Source: Lepidodermella squamata
Taxonomy: Eukaryota > Animalia > Gastrotricha
Length of the DNA stretch: 64,000 bases
Assembly: GCA_047495785.1 (NCBI GenBank)
Contig: JBLDXI010000003.1
Coordinates: forward strand, 3,472,001 to 3,536,000
Direction: 5' to 3'
Both the position numbers and the translations under genes were made by a program. The notes under the pieces were generated by a model, which searched no databases, was not told the origin of the DNA, and was given only the letters and a program-made list of their open reading frames with translations. This document shows, one piece after another, positions 5,701 to 38,810 of the stretch. The stretch's first letter is position 1, and every line of letters begins with the position of its first letter.

Positions 5701-6384
5701 ATTAATTCAAAAATTTGATATTGAAATTTGATATGAAAATCAAATATTGATTCTCATAATTAGTTTCTTTTAATCTTCAGGTCATTGTCCTTCATTTCGG
5801 AGAAGTTCCACAAGCTACCGTATGGCTTACAAAATCCAGGTTCCAATGCCGGCGAACGGCAGCCGTCTTCCGGTATCAGGCTGAAATCTATGAACGACGG
5901 CCCAACTCAACATGTCAATCAAAAGCATGGTAGGAAGAACCAGAAATCCAAATCGCTCTCTGTGAGTTGGCCTAACATGGGCCTGTCGAAATCTGTGTCG
6001 AACTCGATCGAATTCTCGGCCAGCTTGTCCGACCAGTCCGACATTGATCGAGCTGTTGTCTACCTGCGCAAGATCGGCTATCGAAAGGGCAAGCACGCGG
6101 GTGGTTTCTCGGCTAGTCTCGCCGATAAATCGGACCAAGATTTGGCGCGGAGGTTTTTTTCGCGCAAATTCGGTGATGGGAAGGGCGGGCTGAAGCGCCG
6201 GCGTGGCAAGAAGGCTCGAAAGGCCCGAAAGGCCCGAAAGGCCCGAAAGGCCCGAAAGCAGCCGACTGGGGCCACGAATTTCAACGTTAACAACCAGATC
6301 CAACTTCCAGCAAATGTCGATGCTCGGATAAACGCGAATTCTAAGCGTGTTCGCGGCGGAAAGAAAAAGAAGAACATTATTTGA
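2732..6384 (+). CDS. Family D secreted Lys/Arg/Ser/Pro/His-rich protein D1 (~995 aa, 4 exons)
   Basis: Exons 2732-2777, 3162-3649, 3702-5551, 5781-6384; all GT-AG and frame-consistent (2988 nt). Signal peptide MRAIAIITFIASCLIAFDSCVA. Four FSxSLSDxSDI repeats, ESCSE-type repeats and (KAR)5. Confidence 0.8.
6211..6258 (+). repeat. 9-nt coding tandem repeat encoding (KAR)5K
   Basis: AAGGC[TC]CGA x5 in the last exon of D1. Confidence 0.9.
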
Positions 6385-7200
6385 AGTGAATTTATTTATC
6401 TCTATCAGTTCATTATTTAAAATCTTTAATTTTTTTCGCAAAATATTTATCTTATATTAACTATGGTGTTACCATTCTCTGAACTTGTGAATCTGCTAAC
6501 ATATTGTATTGTATTTAAAATTTCGAATGAGATTGGGATGCTGTAGTAACAATAAAATAACATTTTTCTTCAGTTCTGGGTTTTTTCAACTTGAGATAAA
6601 TTCAACTTCAGGAACTTCAGAAATTACTCGCTCGAATCCATACACTTTCCAACCGCTGAAATTGACGTTTCGTCGGTAAAATGTTTCCAAGTTTGGTTGA
6701 ACCCCGAAGCTGCTCTGCGAGATGGGCCCCTGAACCGAAGTTCATTTTTTATTCATTTTGATTTTAATTCATTTTTTGAAAATTCAATTAAATCGGTTAC
6801 ATTGAAGCTCCAGAAGCTTCTAATATCTGCAAATTCGGCGGAACCCTAAGACAGGAAGCCGAAGACAGGAAAGGGGGACCTATAGGATCGCGAATAATTC
6901 TGATTAACAAAAATTCTGATTAATTTTTCAGATTTTATTCAATTCTCACCTCGATTTATAGACTTCGTCTGGCGTTATGTACTGATTTTGACCGAATACA
7001 GAGAATTTTTGAATGGGAAAAAATTAGTTGTAGTAAAATAATCGTGAATTCAAAGGCACGCGATGTTTTGCGGATACAAACGGTGACATGCGACTCGAAG
7101 AACACGATATTTTTCAAAGTCAAACTCTAACACACGTCCACCGTAAAACTGGTTTTAATTTCATTTTTTATATTTCTAGTTCTGTTACACTGTAGTTTTA

Positions 7201-9441
7201 ATGTTTCTGTCTCGATCGGTATTAATACCGATGATAGCGGCTTGCTGCATCGGTAACTTGATTTTCCAGGAAAATTAGGTGAATTTTGACAAAACATTTT
7301 GTCTTTAGCGGCCAATTATTGTCATGCGAGTTTGATTCACGAAAAGCCAACCGCTGGCGATTCAGATCAATTCGACCTGAAATGCAAAGCCCCTCTTGCC
7401 AAGGATGACACGATAGCAGTCAGCGTTAAAGCTCTCATGGACTTCATTATGAAGTACCAACGAAGCCCAGCGCCCGAACAACAGCAACCGGAACAGCCTG
7501 TTCAAACTGAACCTCCACCAGCTGTTCGTCTACAGAATTCAAATAAAAAATCTCAAAGAAATCGTGTCGGATTCGATTCCCAAGCTGTTAACGCTCCTGA
7601 ACCTGTTCAGGACAATCAACCGGATCGTGTTTACAATAAACGGCAAGGTTACGACAGAAAGCCGAGGAATCAACGCGAATCTAAGCCTGAAGCTAGACGG
7701 AACAACCGGGGAAAAGATATGATGAAAGATTTCTCGGAAGATTGGAACCGAGAAATTGGTCAGAATCGGAGACCACCTCAAGGAAAACGTCGGCAAAAGA
7801 GCCGAAAAATGCACGATGAAGCTTGGAAGCCGGCGAAGAAATATCGATCGAAACCGGAGAAAAAACGATCGCTGTCTGCCAAGGAACCGAAGGAAGAACC
7901 GAAGCCGCAAATACCCCCAGTACCAGAGCACCAACCCAAGCCATCTCATCATGCCGTCGCGAAGCCATCGTTCAGTTTCTCGGCGAGTCTATCGGACAAA
8001 TCTGATATCGACAAGGCTAACAAGTATTTGAAGCGAAAGGGTCATGTTAAGCGAGCTTCAATGCCGTTTTCGCTGGAGCTTTCCGATCGGTCAGATCTTC
8101 ACCTGGCCAGGCAGCACTTCAAACAGCGTGCTGGTCGAAGGCCGCGCCATTTCGGCAAAATTTCGAAGCGGTCAAGTGAGAGGTATTCCTGTTTTTTTAA
8201 GAGTTGATCATTTTGAGCCAAAATACCATAAATTATTAGTTACAAATTTCAAATTTCAAATTTGCTTATTAATTCTAAAATAGGTATTTTATTTTATTCT
8301 GTAATATTGCTATAATCTATTTTTTTATTTTTTATTTCATATAGGTAATTAACTTCGGAACTTCGGAATTTTTATCACTAATACTTGCTAATTGCTTAAT
8401 TTTTTATTAGTTTTTTGTATTTTTGTTAATAATTCTACCACTAGAAATAAGATTCTAGCCCTAAATTCCTCCGATTTTTTTGCGATTTCGATTCTTACCC
8501 TCATTCGATGGGACTTCTTTCCAACCTGGTGTTCCAAGTTGAGCAGAATAGCTATAAAACCCGACTTCCTAGGCAGTTAGTTTAAAAATCTCTGATTTGC
8601 CAATCGAAAATGCTTAAAATTTCGATAGTGAAAAATTAAATGACATGTTTCAATAAATTATTGTTCCTAATTAATCAAATCAATTAACACTATTTTATTT
8701 ATTTATTAATAATAAAAATATTGGCTTCAAATTTCTCATAAACGGGATTCTGGACATACTTTTTCTCACTTTTTTCTTTTCTCTAGGTCTTTATCCTTCA
8801 TCGCGCCCAAGTACCGAAAACGTGCGCAAAAATCAGCCCAAGAAGAAATCGGAATTCCAGAGAAGCCTGTGCCGAAAATCGCCGACCTATCGACCAACAA
8901 TAAGGGGGACGCTCATCTCCGACTTAAATCAGCCGTAAAACCAGCTGAAGATCAATCTCGAGTCGAAAATTCAAATTCCACTCCGGCAAAAGATCGCAGG
9001 CAAAAGAAAACACGGAAAATAAATTCATCTGAATCTCGATCTGGAAGACCGTTCGGCAAGAACCACCGGCTTCGAGGGTCTCTTTCAGATTCCAAAGGCT
9101 TTTCCGCAAGTTTGTCCGATCAATCCGACATTGCACGGGCTCGTATTTACCTGCGCAAAATTGGCTATCGCAAGGGCAAATTTCCGGGTGGCTTTTCGGC
9201 GAGTCTCGCCGATAAATCCGACCAAGATCTGGCTCGCAAATTTTTCTCGCGCAGGCTCGGCGACGAAAAGGGAGGCGCAAGACGCCGGAATCGTAAGCAA
9301 CAGCCGCCGAAGAATCGGCAGATCAGAAAGCGCAAATTGCCGCCGTCTAAATCTGTTGAATCGGCGAGTATTAAGGCTCGCGGCTCGAAGAAACCGGTTG
9401 GCAAACGAAGCCATGACGAGTCGAACTGTTCGTCAACTTGA
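7201..9441 (+). CDS. Family D secreted basic protein D2 (~526 aa, 3 exons)
   Basis: Exons 7201-7252, 7309-8182, 8787-9441 (1581 nt). Hydrophobic N-terminus MFLSRSVLIPMIAACCIAANYCHA. Four FSASLSD repeats nearly identical to D1. The last intron is at the same phase-2 position (SER|SLSFI) as in D1. Confidence 0.8.
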
Positions 9442-13151: not shown

Positions 13152-14952
13152 TCAGTAGCCGTGCTTCTTGCCCTTGCCGCCTTTCTTGCCCTTGCCTTTG
13201 CCTTTGCCTTTGCCCTTGCCCTTGCCCTTGGCCTTCTTGACCGGTTCAGGCGACGCAGATGACTTGTTGTCGGACCAGGACTTGGACTCGGACTTGGTGA
13301 CGGCCTTCTTGGGCTGCTTCTTGGGCTGCTTCTTCTTGGGGAGCTTCTTCTTGGGCTGAGGCGAATAGCTGGCGTGCGCGCTCGAAGCCGGGGCGGCGAA
13401 CTTCTTGCTGCTGTACGAAACATCGGAAGTCGAGTGGTAAGAGACGGACTTTTCCTTCGCCGCGATCTTCGCCTTGTTGGCCTTCTTCGACTTCTTGGTC
13501 GAGCCGCTCTCCTTCGCCTTCTTCTTGTTCTCGTAGCTGGCGCTGGCGTACTTCTTGCCCTTGCTGTACTTGATATCAGCGCTCAGACGGGCCTTCTGCT
13601 TCCGCTTCTTGTCGTGCTGGTTCGACGAGTAGCTGGCGTACTCCGAGGCGGACGAGTAGCGCTTCTTCGTGCCCTTGCTCTTGCCCTTCTTGTTCGCCTT
13701 GGCGCTCTTCTTGGACGCCTTCGTCTCGATCGAACCGCTCAGAGCACCGCCTTCGCCGAACTCGGTGTTGGTCTTGCCCTTGCTCTTGGTCCAAGTCTTG
13801 TCCTGGCCCTTGTCGGTGTTGCGGGTGAACGTGATGGCGTCAGTATCGCGCTTGTTGTCAGTGCCAGCGTCGTTGTCATACTCCTGGTTGAACTTGCCGT
13901 GCTTGTTGAACTTGCCACGGCCGCGGATCTTGGCCTTCTCGTTCCTGGACTTGGCTTCGGCAGACGCCTTGTCAGACCGCGAGTGCTTGTTGTAGTTCTT
14001 GCGCTGGTGGCTGGCCTTCTTCTTCCACGACTTCTTCGCGTCCTTCTTCGACTTCTTGTCCTCGACAGTGGCGCTGACGGCGATGTCGAGGCCCTCGTGC
14101 GACGACTTGGCCTTCGCGGACGCCTTGGTCTCCTCGAAGTTGCTCTTCTTGTTCTTGGTCGCAGCGTTGATGTCGACAGCCTGTTGCTCGGCGTTGAACT
14201 CTTTCTCCTTGGCGTCGAGCTTGGTGCTGTCCTTGGCGTTGAGCTCGGTCTGCTCCTGCAGGTTCTCGGGCTGGACTGGGCCTTGGTTGCGTAGCTTGAT
14301 CAGCTTCTCGATGGCCTTGAAGTCGCGAGCATCGCTGCCGGAGCCGTACGAGTAGCTGTTGCTGCCGCTGCCGCTGCTCTTGCGGTGCTTCTTTCCGTGC
14401 TTCTTGCCGTGCTTCTTGCCATGCTTCTTGCCGTGCTTCCTCGAGGCAGACGAGTCAGAGCCGCTCGAGTACCGGCGCTTCTGGTGGTGGCGACGACGGG
14501 GCACGTACGAGTCGCTGCTGGCGAACTTCTTGCCGTGCTTCTTGCCGACAGCCTTCTTGCCGCCGCGCTTCTTGGGCGCAGACTGGGAAGAGTGCGACTC
14601 CTTGGACTCAGCAGACTCCTTCGATTCCTTCGATTCCTTCGATTCGGGCGATTCCTTCGACTCGGGGGACTCCTTCGATTCGACAGAGTGCTTCGGCTGG
14701 GGCTTCTTGCTGACGACGGCCTTCTTGTTCTCGCCTTGGTTGTTCTTCGCGTTTTCCTGTTGCTTCGGGAAGTTGAAGTCAGGCAGCTGGAATTGCTGTT
14801 GCTGTTGTTGCGGTTTCTGTTGGGCATTACCGTCCGCCGAGATAGCAACTGAAACGCGATAAAAGTTAGGTAGTTTAAATTGAAAAAATTGATATTTTAA
14901 ATATTTTACCGAACAGGTACGCCGCAATGGCGATCGGGAGCAGGATCCGCAT
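13152..14952 (-). CDS. Family A secreted basic protein A2 (~579 aa, 2 exons)
   Basis: Exons 14952-14910 and 14848-13152. Signal peptide MRILLPIAIAAYLFVAISA, then polyQ, ESKESP repeats, KKHG repeats, family A core and (KG)n tail ending KKHGY. Confidence 0.9.
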
Positions 14953-17425: not shown

Positions 17426-20400
17426 CTAATGGTGTCCGAATTTCTTCGGCGGCTTCATCAGAGGATCGCTCGAGTCAGAGTCGACTTCGTTGGTCTCAGA
17501 TGACGAGTCGTAGACGCTCCGCTGCCTCGGCACCTTGGAGGCACAGGGCGCCGCTGGCTTCGGCGCCTCGGCTGCGGTGTTGTAGTGTTTCTTCTCAACC
17601 GGCTCGTGACGGCGCTTCGGATGAGCGGGTTTGGACCAGGATGATACGCTTCGGCGATTGCCGTAACGGCGGTGGTTTTTCCGAGGATGACGGTCGTAGC
17701 TTCGGCTGCGGTACGAGAACGACCGGCGAGCGCCCGAGTGTTTCGCCACGCCTCGGTTGCCGTAGTAGCCGCCACGACGGTAATCGCCACTCGAGTAAGA
17801 CCTAGCATTGTAGTGCCTACCCTTCCGGTTTGGCAAACGCCTCGGCAGTTCTTCGGAATAGCTGCCGTGGCTGTAAGAGCGAGCATGACGAGGAGCACCC
17901 GACTTCAACCTGACCGCGCTTTCAGACGCACTCCCCGATTTCGAAATCGATTTGCTTCGATAATTTTTCGCAACCGACCCGCTGGCTGACCTCGAAACTG
18001 GCTTTTGCTTCGGTTTGGCAATCTCTGGACGTTTGATCAGCTGCTGGTACCGCTTCTTATCCCGGTTAAGGCGAGCCTGGGATTCTTCGGACTTGGAGCT
18101 GCGAGATTCGGCCTTGGGAGCTGATTTCTGAGGTTCCGCTGAGCTTCGATCGATACGCTTGTAATCGGAAGCTGGCTTGATTATTTTCGGTTTTTGAGCT
18201 GAACTCTTTGAAGCACTCGACCGTTTGATCCGCTTTCTCGGCTTTTCTTCCGGCTTTTTAGCCGGCTTTTCCGGGACCTTCCGCTCTTCTGATGACTCCT
18301 TTTTCGAAGAACTTTTCGACGGTGTGATTTGCTTCTTCGGCTTTTCTTCTGGCTTTTTCGCGGGTTTAACAGGGACTTTACGCTCTTCCGATGACTCTTT
18401 CTTCGATTCTTCACTTTCACTCGATTGCTTTTGTTTCTTGCCATATTGCGGCTTCTTAGGGGCTTCTGAAGACTTGGACTCTTGTTTCGCCTCAGATCGA
18501 GCTTTCTCAACAGATTTCTTCGCTTTTTTAGGCGGCACCTTCTTCTTCTCTTCGGATTTCGAGCCACTTTCCTGTTCAGACTCCTTCGACGCCGATTTAG
18601 ATTCTTCCTTTTCCGATTCCTTCTCGGAGCTTTCAGCCTCGGATTTCGACTTGGAATCTTCGTTGGTCGAAGCAGCTTTTCCCTTATGCTTCCGCTCAGC
18701 CTTCGCCTTGGCACGTGCCTTGTAGTGCCTGAACAACTTCTTCCAGAAACTCAACGGCTTACACACAACCTCGTCATCCGTCAACTGTGTCCGACTGGAC
18801 CCTAGCAGCAGTCGGGGGGTGGCTGGGCTCACCGTAGTCTCCTCTCCTTGGCTCACAGGCGCCGCCGTTGAAGTCGGGCGATCAACATCGGCCACCGTCT
18901 CAGTTCCAGCAGCTTTCGAGGTAAGTTCGGTTGTAGTCGAAACTTCGTCAACCTTTGAAGTAGTGATCGTACCTTCTGAAGCGGTGGTCGTGGTCTCAAC
19001 GAGTTGCTTCGCCGTAGTAGGTTCAGTTGTAGCTGGCTGGTTCCTAGTTGGTTGATTTGAAGTAGTAGGTTCAGTTGTAGTCGGCTGGTTTCTAGTAGGC
19101 TGAACAGTTTCAGTTTGAGTTGAAGTTGGCTGGGTAGTAGCCGGCGTTGTAGTCGTCGAAGTGCTAGTTGTAGTTGCTTCTGTCGTCGACTCCAAGGTCG
19201 CGGTGACGAGATCTAGTACGTTTTGAAGGAAGAAGTTATCACCAGTTTCAGCCGATGGAGCTTTGCATTGCTTATGCTTGCTTTGATCGATGAACATGCC
19301 AATCACTTCAGAGATCAACGACCGAATCTCGGCCTTGGACATTTTCACGTGCTTCTTGTGATCTTCGTCCAGGTCGAAATTCACGTCACGCTTGATGTGT
19401 TTCTTATCGTCGGCTGGCACCACCTCGACCTCCTCGGCCTTCTTCTCGTCAATCTGCTCGTTGATGAGACCGGCCAGGCTTTCGGCGAGAGCAGCCTTCG
19501 CCTTCTCCTCCTCAGCCCTGTTGCTAGCGATCACCTCGTGAACCTCGGGAATGCCGATTTTTTTCGGCTTGATTTCCTCGTCATCGCCGAAATGGTCGAA
19601 GTGAATCGGCTTCAGCCACAGCTCAACCTCGGGCCGTTCAATGCCGTGCTGCTCTTCGACAGCCTTTTGATCTTCATGGACGGCCTTTTCCTCGGCAGTT
19701 GGCTTATGCTCCTCCTCTTTCTTCTCCTCTTGAGGCTTGTGATCAGGCTCAGGCTTAGGGTCGTCCCAGAAGGACCACAGACCCCTCGACTTTGACGGCT
19801 TTTTCGTCGTGGTCTCGATTTGCGGCGTCGTAGTCGAAGCTTCATGAGCTTCGGCAGTGGTTGAAGTAGTAGTCGAGTGGTGGCCTTCTTCGGCGTTTTC
19901 GTGAGTTTCGGTTGTAGAATGAACTTCCGAGACCGGCGATGGCTCAGTCACAACTTCAACGTCCCTTCTGGCGAATTTTCGAACGTTCGAACGAGCGGCC
20001 TGCCGCTTCTTCTCCGCCTCGGCAAGAACGGCAGCATCATGGACAATCTAATGAGGTAGAAATTAACATTTATTTACCTAATCACCTTTTGATAGCATTT
20101 AATTAATTAATTTTAAATTTCAAATTAATTTAAATAAAATTATCCCGATCTCTAGCGATGTGCGAAAGGAGCACCGCGCTGGAACCTCAAATTTAGCGCT
20201 GGAACCTTAAATATACAGCGTGTCCCATAATTAAAGTAATTAACGCAAGCAAAGAAAATACACGGAAAAGGGTTTAGAAACTCTAAAATGAAAAAGTCAC
20301 ATCTCATGGCCAAACAAATTTTAGAAAAATTTAAAAAAAATCACGAGACAATGTATGTCATTTGTTAATGGGATTAAGAAAGACCAGAGAAATTTGGTTC

Positions 20401-23701: not shown

Positions 23702-26700
23702 TCACGCGCTCTCGCCATCACCTGCGTTTTCATGCGGCTTGGGCGGGCGATCACTACGAGGAGCTAAAAAGTGCTTCTTATTCGGGCAAGATCCAACTTT
23801 TTTCGAAACATCCGACGCCTCAACATCGCTTCCCTCGCCCGAGTTCTTCTTCATGATACGGCAAAGGTGGCGAACCAGCTTCCAAACTCGGTAGCTTTTG
23901 CGAGCCGAGAATGCCTTGAAACAGTCGCCGGAGAAAAGGGCTGAATCCTCGCCGCTCTTTGAGCCAGACTTTTTCCGATGCTTCTCAACCTCGTTCTTGC
24001 GGTTCTGAACAGCAGCCGACCAGCTGACCGATGATTTTTTGATCGGTTGAACTGACTTCAACTTGATGCCATGGCCAGCATGCTTTTTCGCCGCCTTTCG
24101 GTCTGATATGTCAGACATACTCTTAGAATAGTGCTCAGAGGCAACTCCCGAGCTTCGATTCTTCTTCAAACCGTATCGCTTGAAGTAGCGACGAGCCTTG
24201 AACACATCGGACTTCTTCTTCAAAGCCGCGGAAAACGACTGCGAATGGCCGCCTCGTTTCTTCGCCTCGCGCTTGAAGTGCTTCCGCGCCCGCGAAATGT
24301 CAGACTTGTCGGACAAACTGGTCGAGAAGTTGATCGAAGCGCGACGAGGCTTGGTCTTGCAGTGTTTAGCCGCATCCTTGATGTCAGATTCGTCCGACAG
24401 CGAGCGGGAATAGTGGTGGGACGCGTTGCCGGAGCTTCGGTTCTTACGAACGCCTCGCTTCTTGAAGTGCTTCTTCGCGCGGATCACGTCAATGCCCTTT
24501 CGAAGGTGCGGTGAAAACGAGCGAGAATCGGCCGAGCCCTGGAACCGCCCGTTCGGCTTCACCGGCTTCGACTTGAAGTGATGGCGAGCTTTCCTGATAT
24601 CGGAAATGTCTGAAAGCGAGGTCGAAAAGTTGATAGATTCAGACTTATTCTTTTTCCGCTTTTCCGAAGCAGCAGCCGAGAAAGACCGGCGTTTCTTGAT
24701 TTGTTTAGCCGGTTTTTTCTTCTTAGGAACCTTTTTCACAGGTTTCTTTTCGGCTGATTTCGAGTGCTTGTGAACGTGTCGATGTTTAGGATTAGGCTTC
24801 GGGTGGGGTTTCGGCTTCGGTTTCTCTTCAGATTCAGCGTCGAAGGATAGCGATTTTCGGGACAGGCTGGAACCAGATTCTTCCTTTTTAGCCGGCTTCT
24901 TCGCCTGCTTCTTCGGTTTCTTCGAAATGGGCTTCGGTTTTTCTGATTTTTCCGATCGAACTTTCTTCGCTGGTTTGCGATGCATTTTCAGGCCACTTGA
25001 AGCTGATGCGTCGGAGACCGAATCGGCAGGAGCCAGTTTCCTTTGCTGTTTGGGCTTCGGCTGAGGCTTAGCTGGTCTGAAATTCGTTTTATAAAATTCA
25101 CTGGAATAAAATTGGAAACATACCTGCGATCTCGCTTCGAAGAGTTGGATTCCGGTTTCTTGAAGTGTCTCGGTGACGGTTTACGCTTTTGCTTCGGCTC
25201 AGACAGGCTACTTTCCGATTTCTTCGGGCGCTTCTCGACAGGACGCTTCGGCTTCGGCTTTTCGACGCGAGGGGGTGAGTGGCGATGGCGCGCCGGAATC
25301 CTGTAAAATTAATAGAAAGCCGTATAAGTTGCCGTAAAAGAGCTTTTGAAATAATCCCTAGTTTAGGCCTAGGGTACGGCCTAGGACTAAATTGGGTTCA
25401 TACTAGGTCATTGAACCCAAATGAAGATGAAACCAAGTAGGAAATTAATTTCTTGAAAAAGGCCAAAATTAAATCAAGGTTGGCAAAATGTGAATTTTGA
25501 ACTTGAAATTAGAAAGAGAACAATTTATCGGGAAAAAGTATGATAAATATCTCCAACCTCTTGCGGTTCTTCGAAATCGAAGAGACTGATTTAACAGAGC
25601 GAGAAACGCGCTTGATCTTCGGCTGAATTTTGCTAATCGATTCGATCGACTTCGAAAACGATTTCCTAGGTCGCTTGACAACTGGGCGCTTGGCATGATG
25701 CTTCCTACCATGGAAAGCAGGTTTGCTGGACTTCTTAGCAGGTCTAAAATATGGAAATTAGAAATCTGTAGTCATGCGAGATAATTTAAGGAAATTGAAA
25801 ATGGCGAAAATCGATTTGAAAAAATCTTCTCACCCGCGTCTAGCGTATTTTGCCGCCGAAGAGTTCCGGGAGCTCGAACGCTTAGGAGCAGGCCGCCTGA
25901 TTCGCTTCTTCGGCTGAGGTTTCTCCGATCTTGAAGCCGACTTCACGCGCTTGATCGGGCTGAAATAACACAATAAATTGATTTTCAAAATCATTCTAAA
26001 ATAGGACTTCAATCACCGTTTCGGCTGCGAATTTCCCGACTCCGATTTTTTATAATGCGCCCTACGTTTCGGATGGCGGGTGACAGGTTTCTGGTGTTTC
26101 GGTTTACGCTGAACTGGCCTGAAATTTCAAGAAAAAATTAAAAATTAAAAATTAAAAAATTAAAATTAACTTTTTATTTTGCTTCGAGCGAGTTGATGCT
26201 GACTTCGAAACCGGCTTCTTCGGCACCGGCTTGATTTCAGACTTCGATCCTGAAGATTTCGACTTCTCGCTAACTGGGCGTCTGAATTTACGGCTTCTCT
26301 CCGGACGAGACACTTTCTTGGGCCTGTTAAGATTCATCTCAAAGTTGCGGGTGGAAATATGTAATATGGTTCCGGGCCTTACTTATCCGAATCAATCAAG
26401 CTTGCTATCAATGAGAAACTCGACTCATGTTTCCGAGCGGGCCTCCTACGTGGCTTGGGTTTCGGTCCCCTAGATTTCGACGAAGCCGATGGTTTCTTAA
26501 CTGGTTTTTCAACACGGTGTTTCCTGACCGGCTTGCTCGGTTTTCGCGGGGATTCCGATGATTTCAAAGCTGAGATCTCTGGCTGTTTGAAAATCACCGG
26601 TCGGTGAGGCTGACTCGGGCGCCGATCTGAAATCGAGTCAGATGACCGTTTTTGATGCTTCTTCGACCGCGGTTTGACTTGAGCTGATTTCGACCTTGAA

Positions 26701-29700
26701 GCCTTGAATTTCCTAACTCGGTGCTTTTTGACCGGCTTTGGAGCTGCCTTTGGCTTGTACTCGGCTGACTGGGAGGCAGATCGAGAGATCGAAGCTGGTT
26801 TCTTAGGAGCTACAGGACGCTTCGGTTTCCAATCCTGTTTCTTCACCGGCTTTTTATTTTTGGGCCTGCTAGATTTTGATGAAGCAGATTCTGACAGCTT
26901 CTTCAATTCAGGTCTCTTCGGCGCCGGCCTACGTTTGACTGGTCTATAAACAACCAAATCTGAGATTTTAAAATTCAAAAATATCTATCGCTTACCTCTC
27001 GTGGAATTTCGGAGGCTTCGGTTCGGACTTCGAGTCGCCTGATCCAGATGAAGCTGACGGCTTCTTGAACTGCTTCTTCGCCGGCTTTTTAGGCTTGGGC
27101 TCTGATTTCGACTTCGAAGAGACTGACTTGCGGAATTTCCTCGGAACCTGTTTCTTCACTGGCCGCTTCTTGGTATCAGGCTTCTTCTGTTTCGGCTTTG
27201 ATTCCACAGAACTTTCCGAGCGGGAAACTGGTCTCGGGGCATGCTTAGGCGGACTATAAAGCACATAGGAAATTTCTTTTAGCGTCAAAAATATTTCACA
27301 AATTTCCTAATACTTACCTCCTCTTTTTTGGCGGAGCTGAAATCGATTTCTTTGGAACAGGCTTTCGTTCACGGCGTTTCATGGCTGGTCGCTTGAACTT
27401 AGGCTCATCCGAGTTCGAAGAGATCGGTTTCTTAACGCGATGCTTCCTCTCCGGTTTCTTCGCCTTAGGCTTCGGCTTACGATCCGCTGATTTCGAATTG
27501 GAACTGTTCGATCGAGAAACTGGCTTAGGTTGCCTAAAATGCCTAGAGTAATGCAGAACAAATTGTATTTAATAGGAAATAAACTGCTGCTTCACACCTC
27601 TTTCGCTGCTTTTCAGGTGCCGTAGTCGGCTTTCGCGGAGCCGGTTTGACCGGTTTCTCTGATTTGGATTCAGATTCCTCGGAACTCTTTGACCGCTTCA
27701 CAATCGGCTTCCTCACGCGATGCTTTTTCGCCGGCTTTTTCGCCTTAGGCTTCGGCTTACGATCCGTTGATTTCGAACTCTCGGATCGAGATACCGGCTT
27801 AGGTTGACGCTTTGGTGAACTTTGAATCAAAAAAAGAAAAAGACATAAATTTCAATGAAAGACATTATAAAAGCTAATTATGATTATTAGAAACCAAATT
27901 ATTCAGTTATTATTTGGAATTTCTATAATCCGAACTTTAGAAAATTGTTCAAATGAATTTTTAAAATTAAAATAAAATCACCCACGTCTTTTCCTGTTTC
28001 TTATGTTCGAAAATTGGTCTCCGCGGCGACTTTCCATGCTGTTTCTTCGCCGGTTTCTCAGTCTTCGAATCGGAGTTTCCAGATTCCTCCGAGCTCTTTG
28101 AAGGCTTAGGTACCGGTTTCCGTTGTACGGGCTTTTTAATCGGCCTTTTAGCCTTTGGCTTCGGCTTGCGATCAGCGGATTTCGAATTCGAACTGGCCGA
28201 TATGGAAATTGGCTTTGGTTTCGGCTTTGGCTTACTGAAAACGCAAAAATCGAGGTTAACAGAAATGCAAGTGATGCAGAAAAATACAAAAATAACCTCT
28301 TCCGCTGCTGCTTATGCTTGGGTTTACGATGTTTCTTGGCTGGTTCAGACTTGGAGGCTGAGTTTTTAGATTCCTCCGAACTCTTAGAAGGCTTCGGCAA
28401 CGGTTTTCGTTGAACGTGCTTCTTCGCTGGCATTTTCGTCTTAGGCTTAGGCTTGCGTTCAGCCGATTTCGATTGCGAACTGACCGATCGAGAAACTGGC
28501 TTCGGTTGTCGCTTCGGTGCACTTGAGACAAATACAAATTTAATTAATGTTCTATAATTGAAAAATATTCCATATTACCTCTTTCGCCGCATCGTAGGTT
28601 CCGAAGCTTGTTTTGGCGGGGCCGGCGGTGCTGGGCGTTGATGGTGCTTCTTGGCCGGTTTCTCCGACTTCGAATCGGATTCAGAGCTTTTTGACCGCTT
28701 CGCAATTGGTTTCTTTACGCGATGCTTCTTCGCCGGCTTTTTCGCTTTTGGCTTGCGTTCAGCCGATTTCGATTTCGAACTGACTGATCGAGAAACTGGC
28801 TTCGGTTTTCGCTTCGGTACACTAGAGACAAGCATTTAATGAGGTTCCACAATTGAAAAAATTAGCTTCAATCGATTTCACCTCTTTCGCCGCATCGTAG
28901 GTTCCGAAGCTTGTTTTGGCGGTGCCGGCGGGATCGGGCCATGTTGGTGCTTCTTGACCGGTTTCTCAGACTTTGAATCGGATTTTGAGCTCTTTGACCG
29001 CTTCGCAATCGGGGTCTTTACGCGATGCTTCTTCGCCGGCTTTTTCACCTTTGGCTTGGGCTTACGATCCGCCGATTTTGAAGTGGAGCTGTCTGATCGA
29101 GAAACTGGCTTCGGTTGAGGCTTTGGCGCCCTTCAAATTTGAAAATAAAATGGATGCATAAAATTCCTGAACTAAAGCAAGAAAAGTGCCAACTAGTCAA
29201 TATAGGTCTTTCGCACCTCTTTTGCTGCTTCGGTTTTCGCTGGACCGGCTTTTGCGGCTTGGCCGGTTTCTCCGACTTGGATTCCGATTCCTCGGAACTC
29301 TTTGGCCGCTTCACAATCGGTTTCCTAACGCGATGCTTTTTCGCCGGTTTGCGTTCAGATTTCGACTCGGAACTTGCTGACTTGGCTTTACGTTTGGGCG
29401 AGCTGTATCAATTAATGATTTAGTCCGTATTGGCAACGGATTTTATGCTATGGTTACCTTTTCTTCGGCTTTTTAGTCTCAACCTCAGGCTTTTTGGCAG
29501 CAGGTTTCTTTTCGCGATTTTTCTTTTCCGGCCCTTTTGACTTGGGTTTCGAGTCCCCAGATTTCGACGACGCCGATTCTTCAGACCTTTTCTCAGCTGA
29601 TTCACGAAAAAGATGCTTTTTGGCTTGTGGTTTACGAAAAAGCTGCTTCTTCGGTTTCGGCTTCGGCCTGTTATCCGCCGACTTCGAGTCAGACTTTGAC

Positions 29701-32700
29701 GCGACTGGGCGTTTAACGGGCCGTTTAGGTTTTGGGCTGTGCTTGCGTTTCTTCGGTCTGTAAACACGGAAATCAGATTTGAATTTCTCAAATTTTCGAA
29801 CACAACTTTATCTACCTTTCTGGGCGCTTCGAAGCTGATTTCTCAGACACGGGTTTCTTCTTCCGATGTTGTTTTGCAGGCTTTTTCTTTTCAACCGATT
29901 TTGACGAAACCGATTTTTCGGACCGCTTCGGCTTCTTAACTCGATGCTTCTTCGGCTTTGGTTTCGGCTTGTCTTCAGACGATTTCGAGGCAGATTTCTT
30001 CGACGGTTTCACGTGGACACGTTTAGCAGGCCGATGTGGTCGCTTTCGTTGTTTCGGCTTGATCGGCCTGTATAACAATTTAGCATTTAGAATTCAATAT
30101 GAAATAAATTATAATTTAAAGACTTTGTGCCAAGTGGACACCCTAAACTTATAGGATACCAGTACTAACTTTGAGGCTTAGAGATTTTCCCATTTTTTCG
30201 CAATATTAAGCGAATTTCGAGCTATTAGGGCCAGTTTACGAGCTATACTTCAGCCTGTAGAGCCGATATCGATTTCAATTATCGATTTTACAAATCAGTG
30301 ATTTTGCAAACTTTACAAACCTAAAATCCGAGGGCGTCGGTGCAGGAGTATCAAGAAGCTAAAATTTGGCGTTGGAACCTCGCGTAAAACTCATTTTCAA
30401 ATTCATTCATTGCGTTTTTCGGGAAAATGATCTTCGAAATATTGCAAAAAAATTCAAAATAAATTGCACCAAAATATCAAATAAATTTGAGGTTTAATCA
30501 CTCGCCATTTCGCAAAATTCTCAATTTCCCAGGAAAATGAAAGATTATTACCTTGATTCTTTCGAGCTATCCGATTTCGATTTTTTCGAAGCAGATTTCT
30601 TCGTGAGGACCTTTTTGACTGGTTTCTTATTTTTACCAGATTTTGACCCGCTCGATTTTTTCGGGACCGGCTTCTTCACACGATGCTTTTTCCCATGCTT
30701 CACAGGACGTTTGTTCTTCGACTTCGATTCAGATTTTGCCGGTTTCGGACTGGGCTTCTTACCCGGGTGTTTCCGAGGCTTGCGTGGGACGAATTCCGAC
30801 TTGGACTGCCTCTTCTTCTCGTAGCCGTGCTCTTCGAAATAACGACGAGCCTTGTGAATATCCGATAGATCCGACATACTGGCCGAAAACGACTTGCGAT
30901 GATCAGTCGGCTTCTTCTTCAAGCCGCGCTTCTTGAAGTCCTTTCGAGCCCGGGTGATGTCAGACTTATCCGACAAACTGGCCGAGTAAGGTCGATTAGG
31001 GTGTTCGGTCTTCTTCCTCAGGCCTTTCGCCTTAAAATCAGCCTTAGCCCGGTTGATATCGGACAAGTCGGATAAACTCGCCGAGTACGGCCGGTTGTCC
31101 TTTTCCGGCTTCTTCTTCAAACCCTTGTCCTTGAAGTCCTTCTTCGCCCGGTTGATGTCCGAAATGTCAGACAGGCTGGCCGAGTAAGGCCGATCCTGTT
31201 TCTCCGGCTTCTTCAACAAACCCTTCCGCCTGAAGTAGTCCTTCGCCTTGATAACATCAGACTGGTCGGATAAACTGTCGGAAAATTTATCAGGGTGCTG
31301 GTTCGAATCCTTATTCTTCTTAATTCCATGCTTTTTGAAGTGCTTCCTAGCTCGCTCGAGGTCGTCAACATTCCTCAAGCCGATGGAAAAGGATCGAGAA
31401 TCAGCCGAACCTTGGAACCTGCCGCGGTAGCCGAACTTCGAAAAGTGCTTCCTGGCTCGTTGGACATCGCTTTCATCGGACAAACTCGTCGAAAAATCGA
31501 TCAAGTGCTTCCGCTTTGATCCGTAACCTCGTTTGCGTTGCGGCTTCTTTTCACGCTTGACTGGTTTCTTGTTTTTCTTCTCAATAATGACGTAATCACT
31601 CGATTTGGTTGCTCGCTTCTTCGAAGGGTGTTTCTTGGCAGGAACTCGCTTTTTCGGCTTCGGCTCAGAGCTAACTGGCACTGGGGGTCTGGGCCGATAT
31701 GGGCTCAGAGCGGAACGGCCTTTCTTCGGCGTTTTAACCGGCTTCGACTTGGCCGAGAATGATTTACGCTTCGTCTGTTTCGGAGCAGCCGTCTTCTTCG
31801 AGTTTTTGAAGGCCGGGTGGTCGAAATTAACAGGTTTTTCCTGTTCAACTTCTTCCGGAGAATCAGGCTTTGAAGCTGGTTCCGCGTTAAGAACAGCCTT
31901 CAATACAATTTTCGGACTTTCGATGCGCTTGGCTGGTTTCTTCGCCTTCGGCTTCGGCTTCTCTCGTCGCGATTTCTCGTGGAATTTTTTAGCCCGTCGA
32001 CGATCAGAAGCGTCGGATAGGCTCTCGGAATACGGCTCCCCAGACCGTTCGGGTCTCTTGCGCAAACCTTGGCGTTTGAAGCTCTCCCGGGCTCGTTCGA
32101 TATCAGACGCGTCTGACAAACTGGCCGAGATACGCTCGTTAGGCCGGCCTCGTCGCTTTTTCAGCCCTGTTCGCTTGAAATGAAGCTTAGCCCGTTCGAC
32201 GTCAGATTTATCCGACAGACTGGCTGAGAATGACCTGCGGTTGTTTCGCTCGGGTTTCTTCCTCAAGTTAATTTTCCGGAAATGTCGCTTCGCCTTGATC
32301 ACGTCAGACCGGTCCGACAGGCTGTCGGAGAATTTCTTCGAATCGGATTCTCGGTTCTTCTTCACGCCGTGCGTTCGGAAATGCTTCCGAGCCCGGGCCA
32401 GGTCGGCTCGGTGGGTCAGACCGGGTGAAAATGAACGAGAATCCCCGGCGAACTGAACACGGCCATTGCGCTTGTGGGGAACGCGGCGGAAGTGACTTTT
32501 CGCCATTTTAATGTCAGATTCGTCGGAGAGGCTGATCGAGAATGGAATGGCTTGGTTGGTTCCTTTGTAAGTAGGCCGCGAGGCGTGTTTTTTCGAGACG
32601 GTCTTCTTCTCGGCAATAGCGGGCCGACCAACCGGCTTGCGAGATTTACGCTCCGATGCGCTGTTTGAACCTGATATAAATTAAAAAATTAGGTTAAACT

Positions 32701-35700
32701 GAAATTCAGCAATAAATTTCCCGAAACTTTCGGCATTTTTGTTTGTTCGATATGAACCTGGGCTTTTTATTTTGGCTCAAAGTTATGTAAAGAAAAATTT
32801 GGGTTCAACGTTAGGATATCGTTAGGATATCGGAAAAATCCCTGATTTGTAAAACCGATACTTGGAATCGATATTTGCAGGACCTCCACCCCAATACCAG
32901 CAGCGACAAAGTCGTCGCCAGCCTAAAGGATTCAACGATGCGTGACGAATTCAACCGGAATGACGCTACAACACTGCGGCTCGTCGAAAATATCAGCACC
33001 AGCTCGGCCCAATTAGGCCTCCTCACACAGCTGATGAGCATTTACATGGGACAAATCGGCTCCTCCAATAACACCCACCCAGCGCTGCTCTCAATTCTGC
33101 CAACTCACTCATCCTTGCACTAAATACCTTCGCTATAATTTACCTTATCTGCGATAGAAATCGCTCCAAATTCGAACAATAATTCCGACGCTTCAAGTCT
33201 CGACAGCCCCGCAACCGCCAGAATACGGAACATCCTCAAGGGCTATCCCGCTCGACAAATAAGCCAACGAAGCGGAACCAAAACTACAGCCGCGCAAAAA
33301 GCGCTTCTATTATTGAAAATCAAATAAATCCCGAATTTTTGTATACATATTTTTCCAGTGATCTTAATAATTGTCAATTCTCTCGCAATATCATTATCGA
33401 TTTCCCGTTATACTCCCTTTCGTTCTCTCGCTTTCCAGGAATATAGCGCTATTTCACCTGGGGAATGTGCTAAGCGGACGCGCGACACGCAAGTCGAGCG
33501 CGATTGGTCGATACCGAAATACAATGATAATAAAATGAGGAGTTTCAGATCATTTCTGCCTGACTGTTATTTACTCTTTATATCGGTATCCGTACCGTGC
33601 CGGATATTACAGTACTCTAAATTGAGAAAATTCGTTAAGCATACACGAAATCAAGCATTTCGAAGGAATCGTAATTAGCGGCTCCATATTCACACCGAAA
33701 CGTTAGGAAATTCGGCAATGGAGTTCCTCGATTTCGGAGGTCGAAGGCATTCCAAACAAATTAAAAAATAACAGCAAATGAACTACAACGTCATTTTCGG
33801 ATCCAAACCGGGTCTGCTCTACGGCTACGGTGATTCGTTGGGTTCTGGATTCGGATCGTAAGGATTCGTCCGGTCTCTGGGAAAACTACCTGGCCATGAC
33901 AAGCCATCGGCAGTTAAGAAAATCGTCAGGCGCTTAATGACCTTATTGGCCTTCCTCGATTCCGATATGGTAGACTCGGTTGCCCGGGCCTTGATTGGTG
34001 AAATTCGTGCTAGCAAAAATGCCGACATCCGCTCAAAAATGGTTCATCCATTCGTCGACTACTTTGAGCGAACTTGGCTAACGGTTTTCAAGCCGGCCGA
34101 GTGGAACGTGTTCGGCCTTGATGTGAGGACAAATAATCTAGTCGAAGAAAAAAAACTCGTTGTTCCGTGTTCTATATTAACTAGATTCACACATTCAGCA
34201 TGGCCTTTCCGTGCCCGCCGTTTATGTTCTGATGACCGGAGAATCTTCGCCGAATTACGACGCTTCATTTACTAAAATTATCGACCTGAGTTGAGCCGAT
34301 TCAAAACTGCAGGAGGCAACATTCGACTTCGAGCCTGGCCTTCTGCCCATCGTCCGCAAAATGCGAGGCCGAAACGGTCGCAAAATAATCAAAATAATCG
34401 GTTGCCATTTTCACTATTCTCAATGCCTGTTAAGGTGCGGCTGACGAACAATGTCCTAATTGCATTATCGCCAACTAAAACGCTCACAGATTTGGACGAT
34501 TATTCGGCGCTTCATGTCACTGGCTTTTCTACCTGTCGATCATGTTGTTGTTGTTGCCAAGTACCTCATTTCGAAGGCACCTCCTAGCCTCCAATTTTTG
34601 CGACTTTTTCGAAGATACCTGGCTTGGCATTTCCCGCCTTCTGAATGGAATTTTCGAGATTAAGATTTCGCACGAACAACGACGTAGAGGTAAGCTTTTT
34701 CATTATTAAAAATTTAAATTAATTAATTAATTTTCGAAGTCATCAAATGAACTCGAATCTCACTTCTCCTCATCCGAATGTCTGAGCTTTCATCTAGAAA
34801 GGCGGATGAGATGGCCGTCACTGACAAGCCGTCCCAACAAGCGGCTGGTCGACAAATCGCCCGAAAAAGGGCGGAGGTGAATCAGAAAAACGAAAAAATT
34901 GTTTACGCTTTACGTCGCACGTCGCTGACCTGGCTAATATAAATCGCTAATTAATATTATGCTAATTTGAATACTTATATAAATTCCATATTTTCCTTAA
35001 TTTTCCTTAAATTTGCAAATTTTTGCATAATTTTAAATTTTAAATTTACGAATATTTACAAAAATAATCTTTTCATGACAAATAAGTTCGCAAAATGAAA
35101 GTTGCGACTTACCTTCAAAGTTATTCTTTCTGGCTTTTCTGTCCGTTTTCCGAGCAGTCGCCCAAGGGTAGACGGCCTCATGCGATGCCGATGAGCCGGC
35201 CGAGATCGGCGCCCTACGTCGCGGCGTTTTGCTGACACCCTGTCGCCGGAAATACAGCTTCGCCCGTTCAATGTCGGACTCGTCGGAGAAGCTGTCGGAA
35301 AATTTCGGCGAATTCACCGGAGTTGGCTTCTTCTTGTAGCCTCGCTTTCTGAAAAATCGCCGCGCTCGCTCGAGGTCAGAAAAGTCGGACAGACTCTCCG
35401 AAAAATTCTCAGAGTCTTTGCGATTTTTGTCGCGTCTCGGCACCAGTCGAGCGTAGCCATAACCTTCCAACGGGCTACATTGCTGAACAAGGGGGTTTTC
35501 ATTCGACGTGGATGGGGGACCGCCTTTAGCCGTCTTATGGCGTTCTTTCTGGCCGGCAACCAGTGCTGAAAATGAAAATTATAATACCGTTAATTAATAT
35601 TATGAAAAACGAAATTTTAATAGAAATTTGAAAATTCATCTCAGGGGATGTAAAAAATGCGGGAATTTTCCTTAATTATTTTAAATATTTACTTACCGAC

Positions 35701-35742
35701 AACACAGAGGAGCACTAACGTGCTTCCAGTCGGTGGTCGCAT
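23702..35742 (-). CDS. Giant family D secreted polycationic protein F (~2565 aa, 20 exons)
   Basis: Hand-spliced exons: 35742-35697, 35565-35113, 32670-30552, 30067-29816, 29757-29458, 29402-29217, 29130-28882, 28821-28579, 28521-28297, 28234-27986, 27819-27598, 27533-27318, 27253-26996, 26943-26383, 26323-26171, 26118-26017, 25959-25834, 25743-25558, 25300-25124, 25076-23702. All GT-AG, 7698 nt in one frame. N-terminus MRPPTGSTLVLLCVVALVAG. About 21 FSxSLSDxSD repeats in exons 2, 3 and 20. Some internal splice sites are uncertain. Confidence 0.75.
33900..34690 (+). mobile_element. Two degenerate Mutator-like (MULE) transposase C-terminal fragments in intron 2 of gene F
   Basis: LAFL...FVDYFERTWLTVFKPAEWNVFGLDVRTNNLVE (33937-34150) and a disrupted second copy RRFMSLAFLPVDHV...PPSEWNF...RTNNDVE (34490-34690). 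YF..TW..WN..RTNN..E is typical of MULE transposases. Stops and frameshifts are present. Confidence 0.7.
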
Positions 35743-36894
35743 AGGTAATCAATTTTTATTAAGTGTCCCTAAAAGAAAACAATTAGCATGAAATTAAGAC
35801 AAAATTCTGCAAAATTCTGAAAAAATGAATAAGGAGTAATAGGAAGTTGATTAATGATAAAGCTTTGTAGAAGAAAAATCACAGCTGTTAAATTAAAAAA
35901 CTTCAGCAGGATCATTAGGTCAAATATCGCACCTTTGAAAATTGAACTAACCTAGTGTGAAAATAAAACGTGGAAATTATTTGACCTGGAAGCATTTAAT
36001 TTGATTGCGTAATATCGCCAGCGGTTTCGCGCCCTAAAAATCACTACCAAACCATTCATAATTTTTTCGAAATGAATGAAAATCTTGAATTTTTTCGCCT
36101 TATTTTTTCCGAAAAAGCGTGTGCCACCAATTTATTTAGTCTACACGCGATTAGATGATTTCCTGCTCCGGAAAAGCACGTGTCTTGATTACACAGCGGT
36201 GTTACAAACAAACGACTGTTTCTACCTGTTTGAATTTATTTACCCAAAATAAACAAAGATTTAACGGCAAAAATTTCTTGCATGAATGACGGCCACAAAA
36301 TAATGAAATAAATAATAAATAAATGAAAAGCCGTATTGATTCCCACAGATTTTAAGGTGAAATCGAAGTCATTCATGCGGAAACGAAGAATACCGGAATT
36401 GCGTCGTGGAACTTCACAGCTGAGTAAAATGATTGAATGCGCGAAAATTTAAAATTTATCTAAATGTAAGCAAGCTCGCAAGGACCATTAAATCAATAAT
36501 TCCGTCAACAATTCAATTATTTTGGTAAAATATTCCTTTTTATACCAATCGGCGGCAAATACAGGTATTTTTATCCTTTAATTTTCCATCAATATAATTG
36601 CTGCATACTCGGGTGTGAAACCGTTTATTTATTCCCAACTTAACGCCAACTGCGGGGTCAAGCTTAAAAATTTAGTGAACGGATAAAAAAACTTGAACTT
36701 TTCGTAATTTTTCGACAGCCTCTAATGTTTACTGTTGAACTGCTGCCAGAAATTCCGGGAAGAATAAATAGAAACGGCCTCAATTTCTTGGATCAGAAAT
36801 GTCACCTCTGGAACAGCTTTTTGCCCGTAAAACCGGGTCGGAAAATTGCTCAGCGCTGCGCCGTCGCGTGTCGCGTACGGCGCGCGCCTAGGCT

Positions 36895-37040: not shown

Positions 37041-38810
37041 ATGCGTATCCTGCTCCCGATCGCCATTGCGGCGTTCCTGTTCGGTAAATATTGAAAATTT
37101 CATGTTTTCAACATTTTCAATCGTTGAAATTGTTATTTCGTTTCAGTTGCCAGTAATGCCCAGCAAAAACAACAGCAGCAGCAGCAAATCCAGCTGCCTA
37201 ATTTCGACCTCCCGAAGCAGCAAGACAACGCGAAGAACAACCAAGGCGAGAGCAAGAAGGCTGTCGCCAAGAAGCCCCAACCGAAGCACTCTGAATCGCA
37301 CGAGTCACCCGAATCGAAGGAATCGCCCGAATCCAAGGAGTCTCCCGAGTCCAAGGAGTCGCAATCTTCCCAGTCTGCGCCCAAGAAGCGCGGCGGCAAG
37401 AAGGCTGTCGGCAAGAAGCACGGCAAGAAGTTCGCCAGCAGCGACTCGTACGTGCCCCGTCGTCGCCACCACCAGAAGCGCCGGTACTCGAGCGGCTCTG
37501 ACTCGTCTGCCTCGAGGAAGCACGGCAAGAAACATGGCAAGAAGCACGGCAAGAAGCACGGCAAGAAGAACCGTAAGAGCAGCGACAGCAACAGCTACTC
37601 GTACGGCTCCGGCAGCGATGCCCGCGACTTCAAGGCCATCGAGAAGCTGATCAAGCTGCGCAACCAAGGCCCAGTCCAGCCCGAGAACCTGCAGGAGAAG
37701 ACCGAGCTCAAGGCCAAGGAAAGCACCAAGCTCGACGCCAAGGAGAAGGAGTTCAACGCCGAGAACCAGGCTGTCGACATCAACGCCGCGACCAAGAACA
37801 AGAAGAGCAACTTCGAGGAGACCAAGGCATCCGCGAAGGCCAAGTCGTCGCACGAGGGCCTCGACATCGCCGTCAGCGCCACTGTTGAGGACAAGAAGTC
37901 GAAGAAGGACGCGAAGAAGTCGTGGAAGAAGAAGGCCAGCCACCAGCGCAAGAACTACAACAAGCACTCGCGGTCTGACAAGGCGTCTGCCCAAGCCAAG
38001 TCCAGGAACGAAAAGGCCAAGATCCGCGGCCGTGGCAAGTTCAACAAGCACGGCAAGTTCAACCAGGAGTATGACAACGACGCCGGCACTGACAACAAGC
38101 GCGATACTGACGCCATCACGTTCACCCGCAACACCGACAAGGGCCAGGACAAGACTTGGACCAAGAGCAAGGGCAAGACCAACACCGAGTTCGGCGAAGG
38201 CGGTGCTCTGAGCGGTTCGATCGAGACGAAGGCGTCCAAGAAGAGCGCCAAGGCGAACAAGAAGGGCAAGAGCAAGGGCACCAAGAAGCGCTACTCGTCT
38301 GCCTCGGAGTACGCCAGCTACTCGTCGAACCAGCACGACAAGAAGCGGAAGCAGAAGGCCCGCCTCAGCGCCGACGTCAAGTACAGCAAGGGTAAGGATT
38401 ACGCCAGCGCCAGCTACGAGAACAAGAAGAAGGCGAAGGAGAGCGGCTCGACCAAGAAGTCGAAGAAGGCCAACAAGGCGAAGATCGCGGCGAAGGAAAA
38501 GTCCGTCTCTTACCACTCGGATTCGCAGGTTTCGTACAGCAACAAGAAGTTCGCCGCCCCGGCCTCGAGCGCTTCGCCGGAGCCCAAGAAGCAACCCAAG
38601 AAGAAGCAGCCCAAGAAGCAGCCCAAGAAGGCCGTCACCAAGTCCGAGTCCGAGTCCAAGTCCTGGTCCGACAACAAGTCATCTGCGTCGCCTGAACCGG
38701 TCAAGAAGGGCAAGGGCAAGGGCAAAGGCAAAGGCAAAGGCAAAGGCAAAGGCAAAGGCAAGGGCAAGGGCAAGGGCAAAGGCAAAGCCTTCTACGGCAG
38801 CTACTATTGA
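37041..38810 (+). CDS. Family A secreted basic protein A3 (~568 aa, 2 exons)
   Basis: Exons 37041-37083 and 37147-38810. Signal peptide MRILLPIAIAAFLFVASNA. Near-identical to A2. Long (KG)n tail ending AFYGSYY. AATAAA at 38923-38928. Confidence 0.9.

Follow-up and report, generated by a model that had tools for sequence, protein, structure and literature searches.

An intact 20-exon gene of the gastrotrich Lepidodermella squamata with an array of 16 symmetric phase-2 exons and a probably secreted, polycationic product

Introduction

The DNA studied here is a stretch of 64,000 nucleotides (nt) from the gastrotrich Lepidodermella squamata (GenBank assembly GCA_047495785.1, contig JBLDXI010000003.1, positions 3,472,001 to 3,536,000), referred to below as the window, with coordinates counted from its first base. 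On its minus strand, from 35742 to 23702, it carries a single intact gene of 20 exons, in which an array of 16 consecutive exons arose by old tandem exon duplication and has been kept by selection. The reading that we favour, with a probability of about 0.6, is that this lineage-restricted gene encodes a probably secreted and largely disordered polycation, that the array is spliced constitutively, and that the protein, as we infer, has a role in extracellular material. The locus is a clean case in which one duplicated exon-plus-intron unit builds a disordered segment of 1.2 kilo-residues while the frame is kept, the phylum being little studied and the 2-2 phase class rare. The gene model is well supported and the function inferred, and neither amounts to a new mechanism.

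Gene model and predicted product

On the minus strand between 35742 and 23702, T-poor, A/C/G-rich open stretches alternate with T-rich gaps. Short GT-AG introns mark the window as animal DNA, and the contig is invertebrate in character and not human. The exon model was obtained by scoring donor-acceptor pairs that keep the frame and by reading the borders directly. Scripted joining of the 20 exons, all with GT...AG borders, produced one open frame of 7707 nt, running from the start ATG at 35742 to the stop TGA at 23704-23702. A preliminary description of this DNA had proposed that the open reading frame (ORF) fragments belong to one gene of 20 exons and about 2565 amino acids (aa). The canonical borders and the single open frame confirm the joining and the exon count, while the length was found to be 2568 aa, the gap of 3 aa being explained by the alternative acceptor of exon 12 (27533 versus 27542).

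The predicted product has a mass of 291 kDa and an isoelectric point (pI) of 11.3, and consists of K 21.5%, S 15.7%, P 10.8%, R 10.4%, E 5.1%, V 4.5% and G 2.7%, so that K and R together make up 32% of it. Net charge lies at about +0.25 to +0.37 per residue throughout the array exons. Length, composition and motif counts were taken from the joined translation, whereas the homology searches were run exon by exon. Assignment of the ORF fragments to separate genes was rejected, as exons 4-6 lack an in-frame ATG and the frame is kept across canonical borders. The idea of a pseudogene was rejected as well, given 7.7 kb of open frame over 20 exons and a ratio of non-synonymous to synonymous change (dN/dS) well below 1.

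Intron phase and coding constraint in the array

Introns 3-19 (n = 17) are all of phase 2, and exons 4-19 (n = 16) are all multiples of three, ranging from 102 to 561 nt, exactly as had been claimed earlier. The locus thus contains a symmetric-exon array in the full sense, with consecutive exons of 3n length and introns of one phase, comprising 16 exons and 17 introns. An AG|N codon is split by 12 of these introns, in agreement with the description of most of them. The lengths of the 17 introns, on the other hand, spread over all three classes modulo 3.

The model frame is free of stops and has the best codon-usage score in every one of the 16 array exons, with a codon-usage table trained on exons 2, 3 and 20 only. 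One of the alternative frames contains stops in 16/16 array exons and the other in 9/16. None of the phase-2 introns can be read through: an in-frame stop is present in 14 of the 17 (at the second codon in 10 of them, owing to donors of the form G|TAA, G|TGA or G|TAG), and the other three are not multiples of three. This is the reason why an ORF finder shows about a dozen separate fragments. The combination of 3n exons with introns of arbitrary length and dN/dS well below 1 reflects real coding constraint. The uniform phase itself was inherited by duplication, and the 16 exons do not represent 16 independent events.

Tandem duplication and selection on the exon copies

Exons 6-13 align as one unit of about 80 aa at the level of both DNA and protein, and they do so together with their introns. 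A hidden Markov model (HMM) built from the unit scored 37-95 bits on exons 6-13 and found weak remnants of it towards the end of exon 3 as well as in exons 4, 5, 14 and 17-18. The closest pair, exons 7 and 8, shows 84% DNA identity, with a synonymous divergence (dS) of 0.40 and dN/dS of 0.24. The introns that follow these two exons (intron 7, 28881-28822, and intron 8, 28578-28522) are 69% identical, compared with 52 +/- 3% for shuffled sequences (maximum 62.5% in 500 shuffles). Independently, Tandem Repeats Finder reported a period of 303 nt at 28446-29117. These results bear out three earlier proposals, namely that exons 6-13 are variants of one unit, that the introns near 28.53 and 28.83 kb are alike, and that exon and intron were duplicated together in tandem; the exon and intron identities and the 303-nt period are those of an origin by tandem exon-plus-intron duplication.

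Among pairs of exons 6-13, the proportion of synonymous differences (pS) was 0.31-0.94, dS ranged from 0.4 to saturated, and dN/dS was 0.07-0.34, values obtained from protein-guided alignment of low-complexity repeats, which may bias dN downward. Synonymous differences are large and non-synonymous differences few, from which it follows that the exons code in the model frame and that the duplications are old. The low dN/dS further means that the amino-acid sequence of the unit is conserved, and not merely its composition. The exon copies are old and under purifying selection, and the locus shows that duplicated exons can stay under sequence-specific selection long after duplication. The array thus arose from a unit of about 300 nt, consisting of an exon plus an intron, which underwent tandem duplication; because its borders lie after the second base of the AG|N codon, the frame was kept at every gain or loss of a copy.

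Splicing of the array and possible isoforms

Joining any donor of exons 3-19 to any later acceptor creates a sense codon at the junction in all 153 cases, and no skip shifts the frame. The earlier statement that any subset of the exons could be skipped in frame therefore holds. This raises the possibility that exons 4-19 form a cassette system comparable to those of tropoelastin and titin PEVK, in which subsets would be skipped under regulation to give spacers of differing charge and length. We regard such a system as unlikely, although its chance is appreciable. The run of 16 symmetric 2-2 exons and the 153/153 sense junctions speak for it, as do an in-frame alternative acceptor at exon 12 and several non-consensus sites, namely AAG acceptors (exons 7, 9 and 11) and the donors GAC|GTGGGT, AAA|GTTAAT and GAG|GTTGGA. 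In tropoelastin, a uniform phase accompanies extensive cassette splicing (bioRxiv 10.1101/2024.12.03.626628). However, descent from one duplicated unit fully explains the uniform phase, and the purifying selection found on each exon would be relaxed in exons that are rarely included. In addition, 13 of the 17 phase-2 introns are only 47-90 nt long, and introns of this length favour splice-site pairing across the intron. Exon skipping, in contrast, is generally tied to long flanking introns and high intron-to-exon length ratios (PMC6142364). Tropoelastin and titin both have such long introns. Since the introns studied here are minimal, constitutive splicing is the most likely mode for the array, and purifying selection on every copy is easier to reconcile with regular inclusion and a sequence-specific role than with a spacer for which composition alone matters.

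Exon 12 has two acceptors that lie 9 nt apart and in frame (27542 and 27533; CTCTAG|G and TTTTAG|G). The pair may represent an alternative 3' splice site, whose use would alter the product by 3 aa.

A different kind of isoform is suggested by the donor of exon 3. If intron 3 were read through, a stop would follow after one codon (AGG TAA) and an ATTAAA 54 nt further on (30498-30551), and a short isoform of 873 aa, consisting of the signal peptide and 15 modules of the repeat described below, is conceivable. The locus could then yield more than one product, with a short secreted isoform or separate gene ending after exon 3, and exons 4-20 belonging to a minor long isoform or to another unit. 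In favour of this, the stop and the ATTAAA lie in an intron that is unusually long (484 nt). Nevertheless, an immediate stop is a general consequence of a GTAA, GTGA or GTAG donor at a phase-2 intron and occurs in 10/17 of them here. Exons 4-6 could not supply a start, since the first Met past exon 3 lies in exon 7, and no signal-peptide-like ATG exon was found among the open stretches of intron 3. Exons 4-19 are, moreover, open, in frame and under selection. Division into several products is accordingly quite improbable.

Helix modules and predicted structure

The array is flanked by 21 copies of a 33-aa module, of which two are in exon 2, 13 in exon 3 and six in exon 20. Each module has a serine/aspartate cap followed by one basic amphipathic helix. 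The three large blocks of modules have a common internal order, and the blocks themselves are therefore duplicates. For a block of seven modules, AlphaFold2 predicted one helix of 13-14 residues per module, joined by non-regular basic linkers, with no packing between the helices (predicted local distance difference test score, pLDDT, 63; predicted template-modelling score, pTM, 0.24). The central unit, made of a K/P-rich basic stretch and an SSEES-type serine/acid patch (SSEESESKSE-type), was predicted as coil lacking secondary structure (pTM 0.13). For the 33-aa module, the idea of a folded repeat domain was rejected on account of the predicted isolated helices and the pTM of 0.24. The placement of the array between two blocks of repeats, as described earlier, was thus confirmed, but the term domains does not suit these blocks, which are predicted to be strings of single 13-14-residue helices. 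The protein is probably largely disordered. Its layout would be a signal peptide, 15 modules, a K/S/P/R-rich coil of 1237 aa encoded by the 16 array exons, six modules and a short tail with Cys.

N-terminus and the paralogue

The protein begins with basic residues, followed by a hydrophobic core of 12 residues that spans the junction of exons 1 and 2 and by a small-residue cleavage-type motif, VAG|Q. This is the layout of a putative classical signal peptide, and the protein is probably secreted. An exon equal to exon 1 in length and phase is present on the plus strand at 2732-2777 (46 nt, phase 1), where it encodes 15 residues of a hydrophobic leader; the next exon there also begins with Ala. 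The equal first exon supports both exon 1 of the gene studied here and the existence of a secretory family.

The low-complexity stretches of the paralogous gene or genes at 2732-9441 (+) are very basic, rich in S, K, R, P and H, and lie in single large exons such as 3996-5561; the 33-aa module occurs there in four pairs (8 copies, at 5343-5519, 6007-6168, 7974-8150 and 9100-9255). The segments 3996-6384 and 7299-9441 resemble tandem duplicates. The paralogue has in common with the studied gene the 46-nt phase-1 signal exon, the 33-aa module and the basic low-complexity stretches, but differs in that such a stretch is contained in one large exon (3996-5561) and is not divided by an intron for each repeat. 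The array with one exon per unit is therefore peculiar to the studied gene.

Search for relatives

A phmmer search with exon 3 against 1.84 billion representative proteins gave no match. Word-based searches of protein collections, with exon 3, with exon 14 and with the last 230 aa encoded by exon 20, gave none either, and these protein searches turned up no fragment of the gene. Pfam (hmmscan; exons 2, 3, 4-14 and 20 singly) gave nothing above threshold. The sub-threshold matches seen with the studied exons and neighbouring ORFs were chance matches only, such as E_motif at 22.8 bits versus a cut-off of 27.3. A profile search of the PDB gave nothing significant (best E-value 0.13), the ESM Atlas no usable match, and an exact 31-nt scan of metagenome contigs no match. 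Outside this locus, the 33-aa module was absent from the rest of the 121.2-Mb genome (151 contigs). As far as these searches reach, the gene is a lineage-restricted orphan, and neither it nor its module or paralogues has detectable relatives.

Proposed function

Outside the cell, the protein would act as a long polycation whose basic stretches are interrupted by serine patches that are acidic or open to phosphorylation. In a secreted material, for example glue, cuticle or egg envelope, it could bind polyanionic partners or bridge between them, in a manner akin to that of the lysine/arginine-rich regions of the flatworm glue protein Mlig-ap1. Three tandem genes for Fam20C-like secretory-pathway kinases are present in the genome (contig 7, 2760135-2780864, minus strand), and phosphorylation of the serine patches would therefore be possible. 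No match to lysyl oxidase was found in this genome, but this is a weak negative, as the family was also unmatched in all 14 control genomes. Elastin-like cross-linking by lysyl oxidase was rejected on this basis, with the same weakness.

Several points, in addition to the possible downward bias in dN, weigh against the favoured reading. The 19 exon junctions were predicted from sequence alone. The published L. squamata assembly derives from amplified DNA; if the present sequence belongs to it, the array may be collapsed or expanded. The signal-peptide layout was judged by eye. The material or adhesive role is suggested by composition and analogy only, and the C-type lectin, vWD/C8/TIL and 17 EGF modules that Mlig-ap1 carries (PMC6410801) were not found by Pfam in exons 2-14 and 20. 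Finally, K/S/P-rich basic repeats with acidic serine clusters are known in nuclear and nucleolar proteins too.

An intracellular product of the treacle/Nopp140 or histone-H1-like kind, located in the nucleus, nucleolus or sperm chromatin, binding nucleic acid and having an N-terminus that is not a signal peptide, would fit the K, S, P and R contents, the pI of 11.3 and the pairing of a basic stretch with an SSEESESKSE-type acidic serine patch in each unit, but is very improbable in view of the classical basic-hydrophobic-small N-terminus, kept as a dedicated exon in the paralogue, and of the lack of a Pfam match to Treacle, Nopp140/SRP40, LisH or linker-histone in exons 2-14 and 20.

The reading of a secreted polycation can be carried further in a speculative form, which we consider doubtful. 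The protein and its local paralogues might be the polycationic, cohesive part of the glue that gastrotrichs make in their duo-glands, or of some other secreted material, evolved independently of Mlig-ap1 on the same charge principle. The capped helices would then be a new module for binding polyanions or surfaces, and the array would let the length of the spacer change in evolution, perhaps also by splicing. In any case, the gene, its module, the paralogues and the basic neighbours described below are candidates in the search for what gastrotrich glue, cuticle or egg envelope is made of. If the link to adhesion were true, a direct comparison with the charge-based glue of flatworms could be made.

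Features of the gene and its neighbourhood

The positions of the features are collected in Table 1. Intron 2 is 2.4 kb long, compared with about 55-65 nt for most of the other introns, because it holds fragments of dispersed repeats. One of these (about 32905-33615) has at least 10 genomic copies of 79-84% identity, and other repeat families match at about 34293-34578 and 34413-34947. The plus-strand ORFs within the intron 2 repeats (32905-33615 and about 34290-34950) gave no Pfam match. At the 3' end of exon 14 (26383-26430), the last 15 or so residues, as read from the translation, resemble the serine/aspartate start of the 33-aa module, and this end may be the relic of a module block inside the K/S/P array.

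Table 1. Positions of the exons, introns, module blocks and flanking signals of the studied gene in the window
Feature	Position	Strand	Length (nt)	Phase	Remarks
Pyrimidine tract and AG	35769..35780	-			26 nt upstream of ATG; read from sequence; possible spliced-leader acceptor or start of 5' untranslated region
Exon 1	35697..35742	-	46	donor phase 1, G|GTAAGT	ATG and first 15 aa of putative signal peptide; paralogue exon equal in length and phase
Intron 1	between exons 1 and 2	-	131	1	
Exon 2	35113..35565	-	453	1-1	remainder of putative signal peptide and 2 helix modules (35213-35410)
Intron 2	32671..35112	-	2442	1	old dispersed-repeat fragments, from genomic copy matches
Exon 3	30552..32670	-	2119	1 to 2	K/P-rich linker separates blocks A and B; first degenerate K/S/P unit at 3' end
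Module block A, exon 3	31982-32548	-			6 copies
Module block B, exon 3	30797-31501	-			7 copies
Intron 3	30068..30551	-	484	2	ATTAAA at 30498
Exon 4	29816..30067	-	252	2-2	degenerate K/S/P unit
Exon 5	29458..29757	-	300	2-2	degenerate K/S/P unit
Exon 6	29217..29402	-	186	2-2	shortened unit copy
Exon 7	28882..29130	-	249	2-2	full unit; youngest pair with exon 8
Exon 8	28579..28821	-	243	2-2	full unit
Exon 9	28297..28521	-	225	2-2	full unit
Exon 10	27986..28234	-	249	2-2	full unit; donor GAC|GTGGGT
Exon 11	27598..27819	-	222	2-2	full unit
Exon 12	27318..27542	-	225	2-2	full unit; alternative in-frame acceptor 27533
Exon 13	26996..27253	-	258	2-2	most diverged full unit
Exon 14	26383..26943	-	561	2-2	about 2 fused units
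Exon 15	26171..26323	-	153	2-2	K/S/P/R-rich
Exon 16	26017..26118	-	102	2-2	
Exon 17	25834..25959	-	126	2-2	
Exon 18	25558..25743	-	186	2-2	weak donor GAG|GTTGGA, then 257-nt intron
Exon 19	25124..25300	-	177	2-2	
Exon 20	23702..25076	-	1375	2 to stop	K/P-rich lead-in, module block C, unique C-terminal tail with 3 Cys
Module block C, exon 20	24080-24634	-			6 copies (2 weak)
ATTAAA	23671..23676	-			26 nt past stop, likely poly(A) signal; AATAAA too at 23548

Neighbouring ORFs of the window carry spectrin, Sushi, C-type-lectin and EF-Tu-type domains. Three more long K/S/A-rich basic ORFs were observed at 37452-38810 (+), 13152-14927 (-) and 71-1468 (+), with 22-24% K and a pI of about 10.3; two of the three end in long (KG)n runs, and none of the three has a Pfam match. 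This suggests a local cluster of lineage-specific basic low-complexity genes. A 99-nt tandem repeat at 18217-18406 (-) lies inside an S/K/E/T-rich ORF of 841 aa (17426-19951) that has no Pfam match and is another repetitive orphan gene.

Comparison with known systems

In treacle (TCOF1) and Nopp140 (NOLC1), basic K/P/A stretches alternate with acidic serine clusters; both are nucleolar, with a LisH N-terminus and no signal peptide, and each central repeat of treacle is encoded by one exon. The studied gene shares with them the alternation of basic and acidic-serine units, and with treacle also the arrangement of one repeat per exon. It is not placed in this family, however, as exons 2, 3, 4-14 and 20 gave no Pfam match to Treacle, SRP40 or LisH.

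The preliminary description had likened the array to those of tropoelastin and titin PEVK, an analogy which holds for the architecture but does not extend to family membership, since phase class, composition, domains and sequence differ. Titin PEVK is encoded by a long run of small, symmetric, tandem-duplicated exons and forms a proline/lysine-rich disordered segment between repeat blocks. The studied gene has both the symmetric exon run and the P/K-rich disordered segment between repeat blocks. In contrast, titin is intracellular and has Ig/Fn3 domains, whereas the studied product has a signal-peptide-like N-terminus and no Pfam domain in exons 2-14 and 20, which sets it outside the titin family. 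The PEVK unit is about 28 aa long versus about 80 aa here, and the studied protein is low in E (5.1%) and V (4.5%) and high in S (15.7%).

Tropoelastin resembles the studied gene in being a low-complexity, largely disordered protein of the secreted matrix with lysine-rich segments, encoded by many small exons of one phase that can be removed or duplicated in frame. Its introns, however, are all of phase 1:1 (bioRxiv 10.1101/2024.12.03.626628), unlike the 2:2 phase found here. They are also long, while those of the studied gene are minimal, and no sequence relation was found. Tropoelastin alternates hydrophobic (V/G/P) and cross-linking exons, whereas hydrophobic exons are absent from the studied gene, whose product has a net charge of roughly +0.3 per residue.

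Mlig-ap1 of Macrostomum lignano is a glue protein of 5,407 aa, of which more than 3,600 lie in K/R-rich regions; it lacks a database homologue, and a charge-based action has been proposed for it (PMC6410801). Like the studied, probably secreted protein, which has 32% K+R and a pI of 11.3 and is K/R-rich in the same sense, it is very large, secreted, an orphan and rich in Lys, Arg, Ser and Pro. The published antigenic peptide of Mlig-ap1 is similar in sequence style to the studied protein. Mlig-ap1 comes from the sister phylum of the gastrotrichs, and gastrotrichs also attach by duo-gland organs. It may be taken as the nearest documented functional analogue, as an argument about how the protein might work. 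By its architecture the gene belongs with the symmetric-exon repeat arrays of tropoelastin, titin PEVK and treacle, but it is a member of none of these three families.

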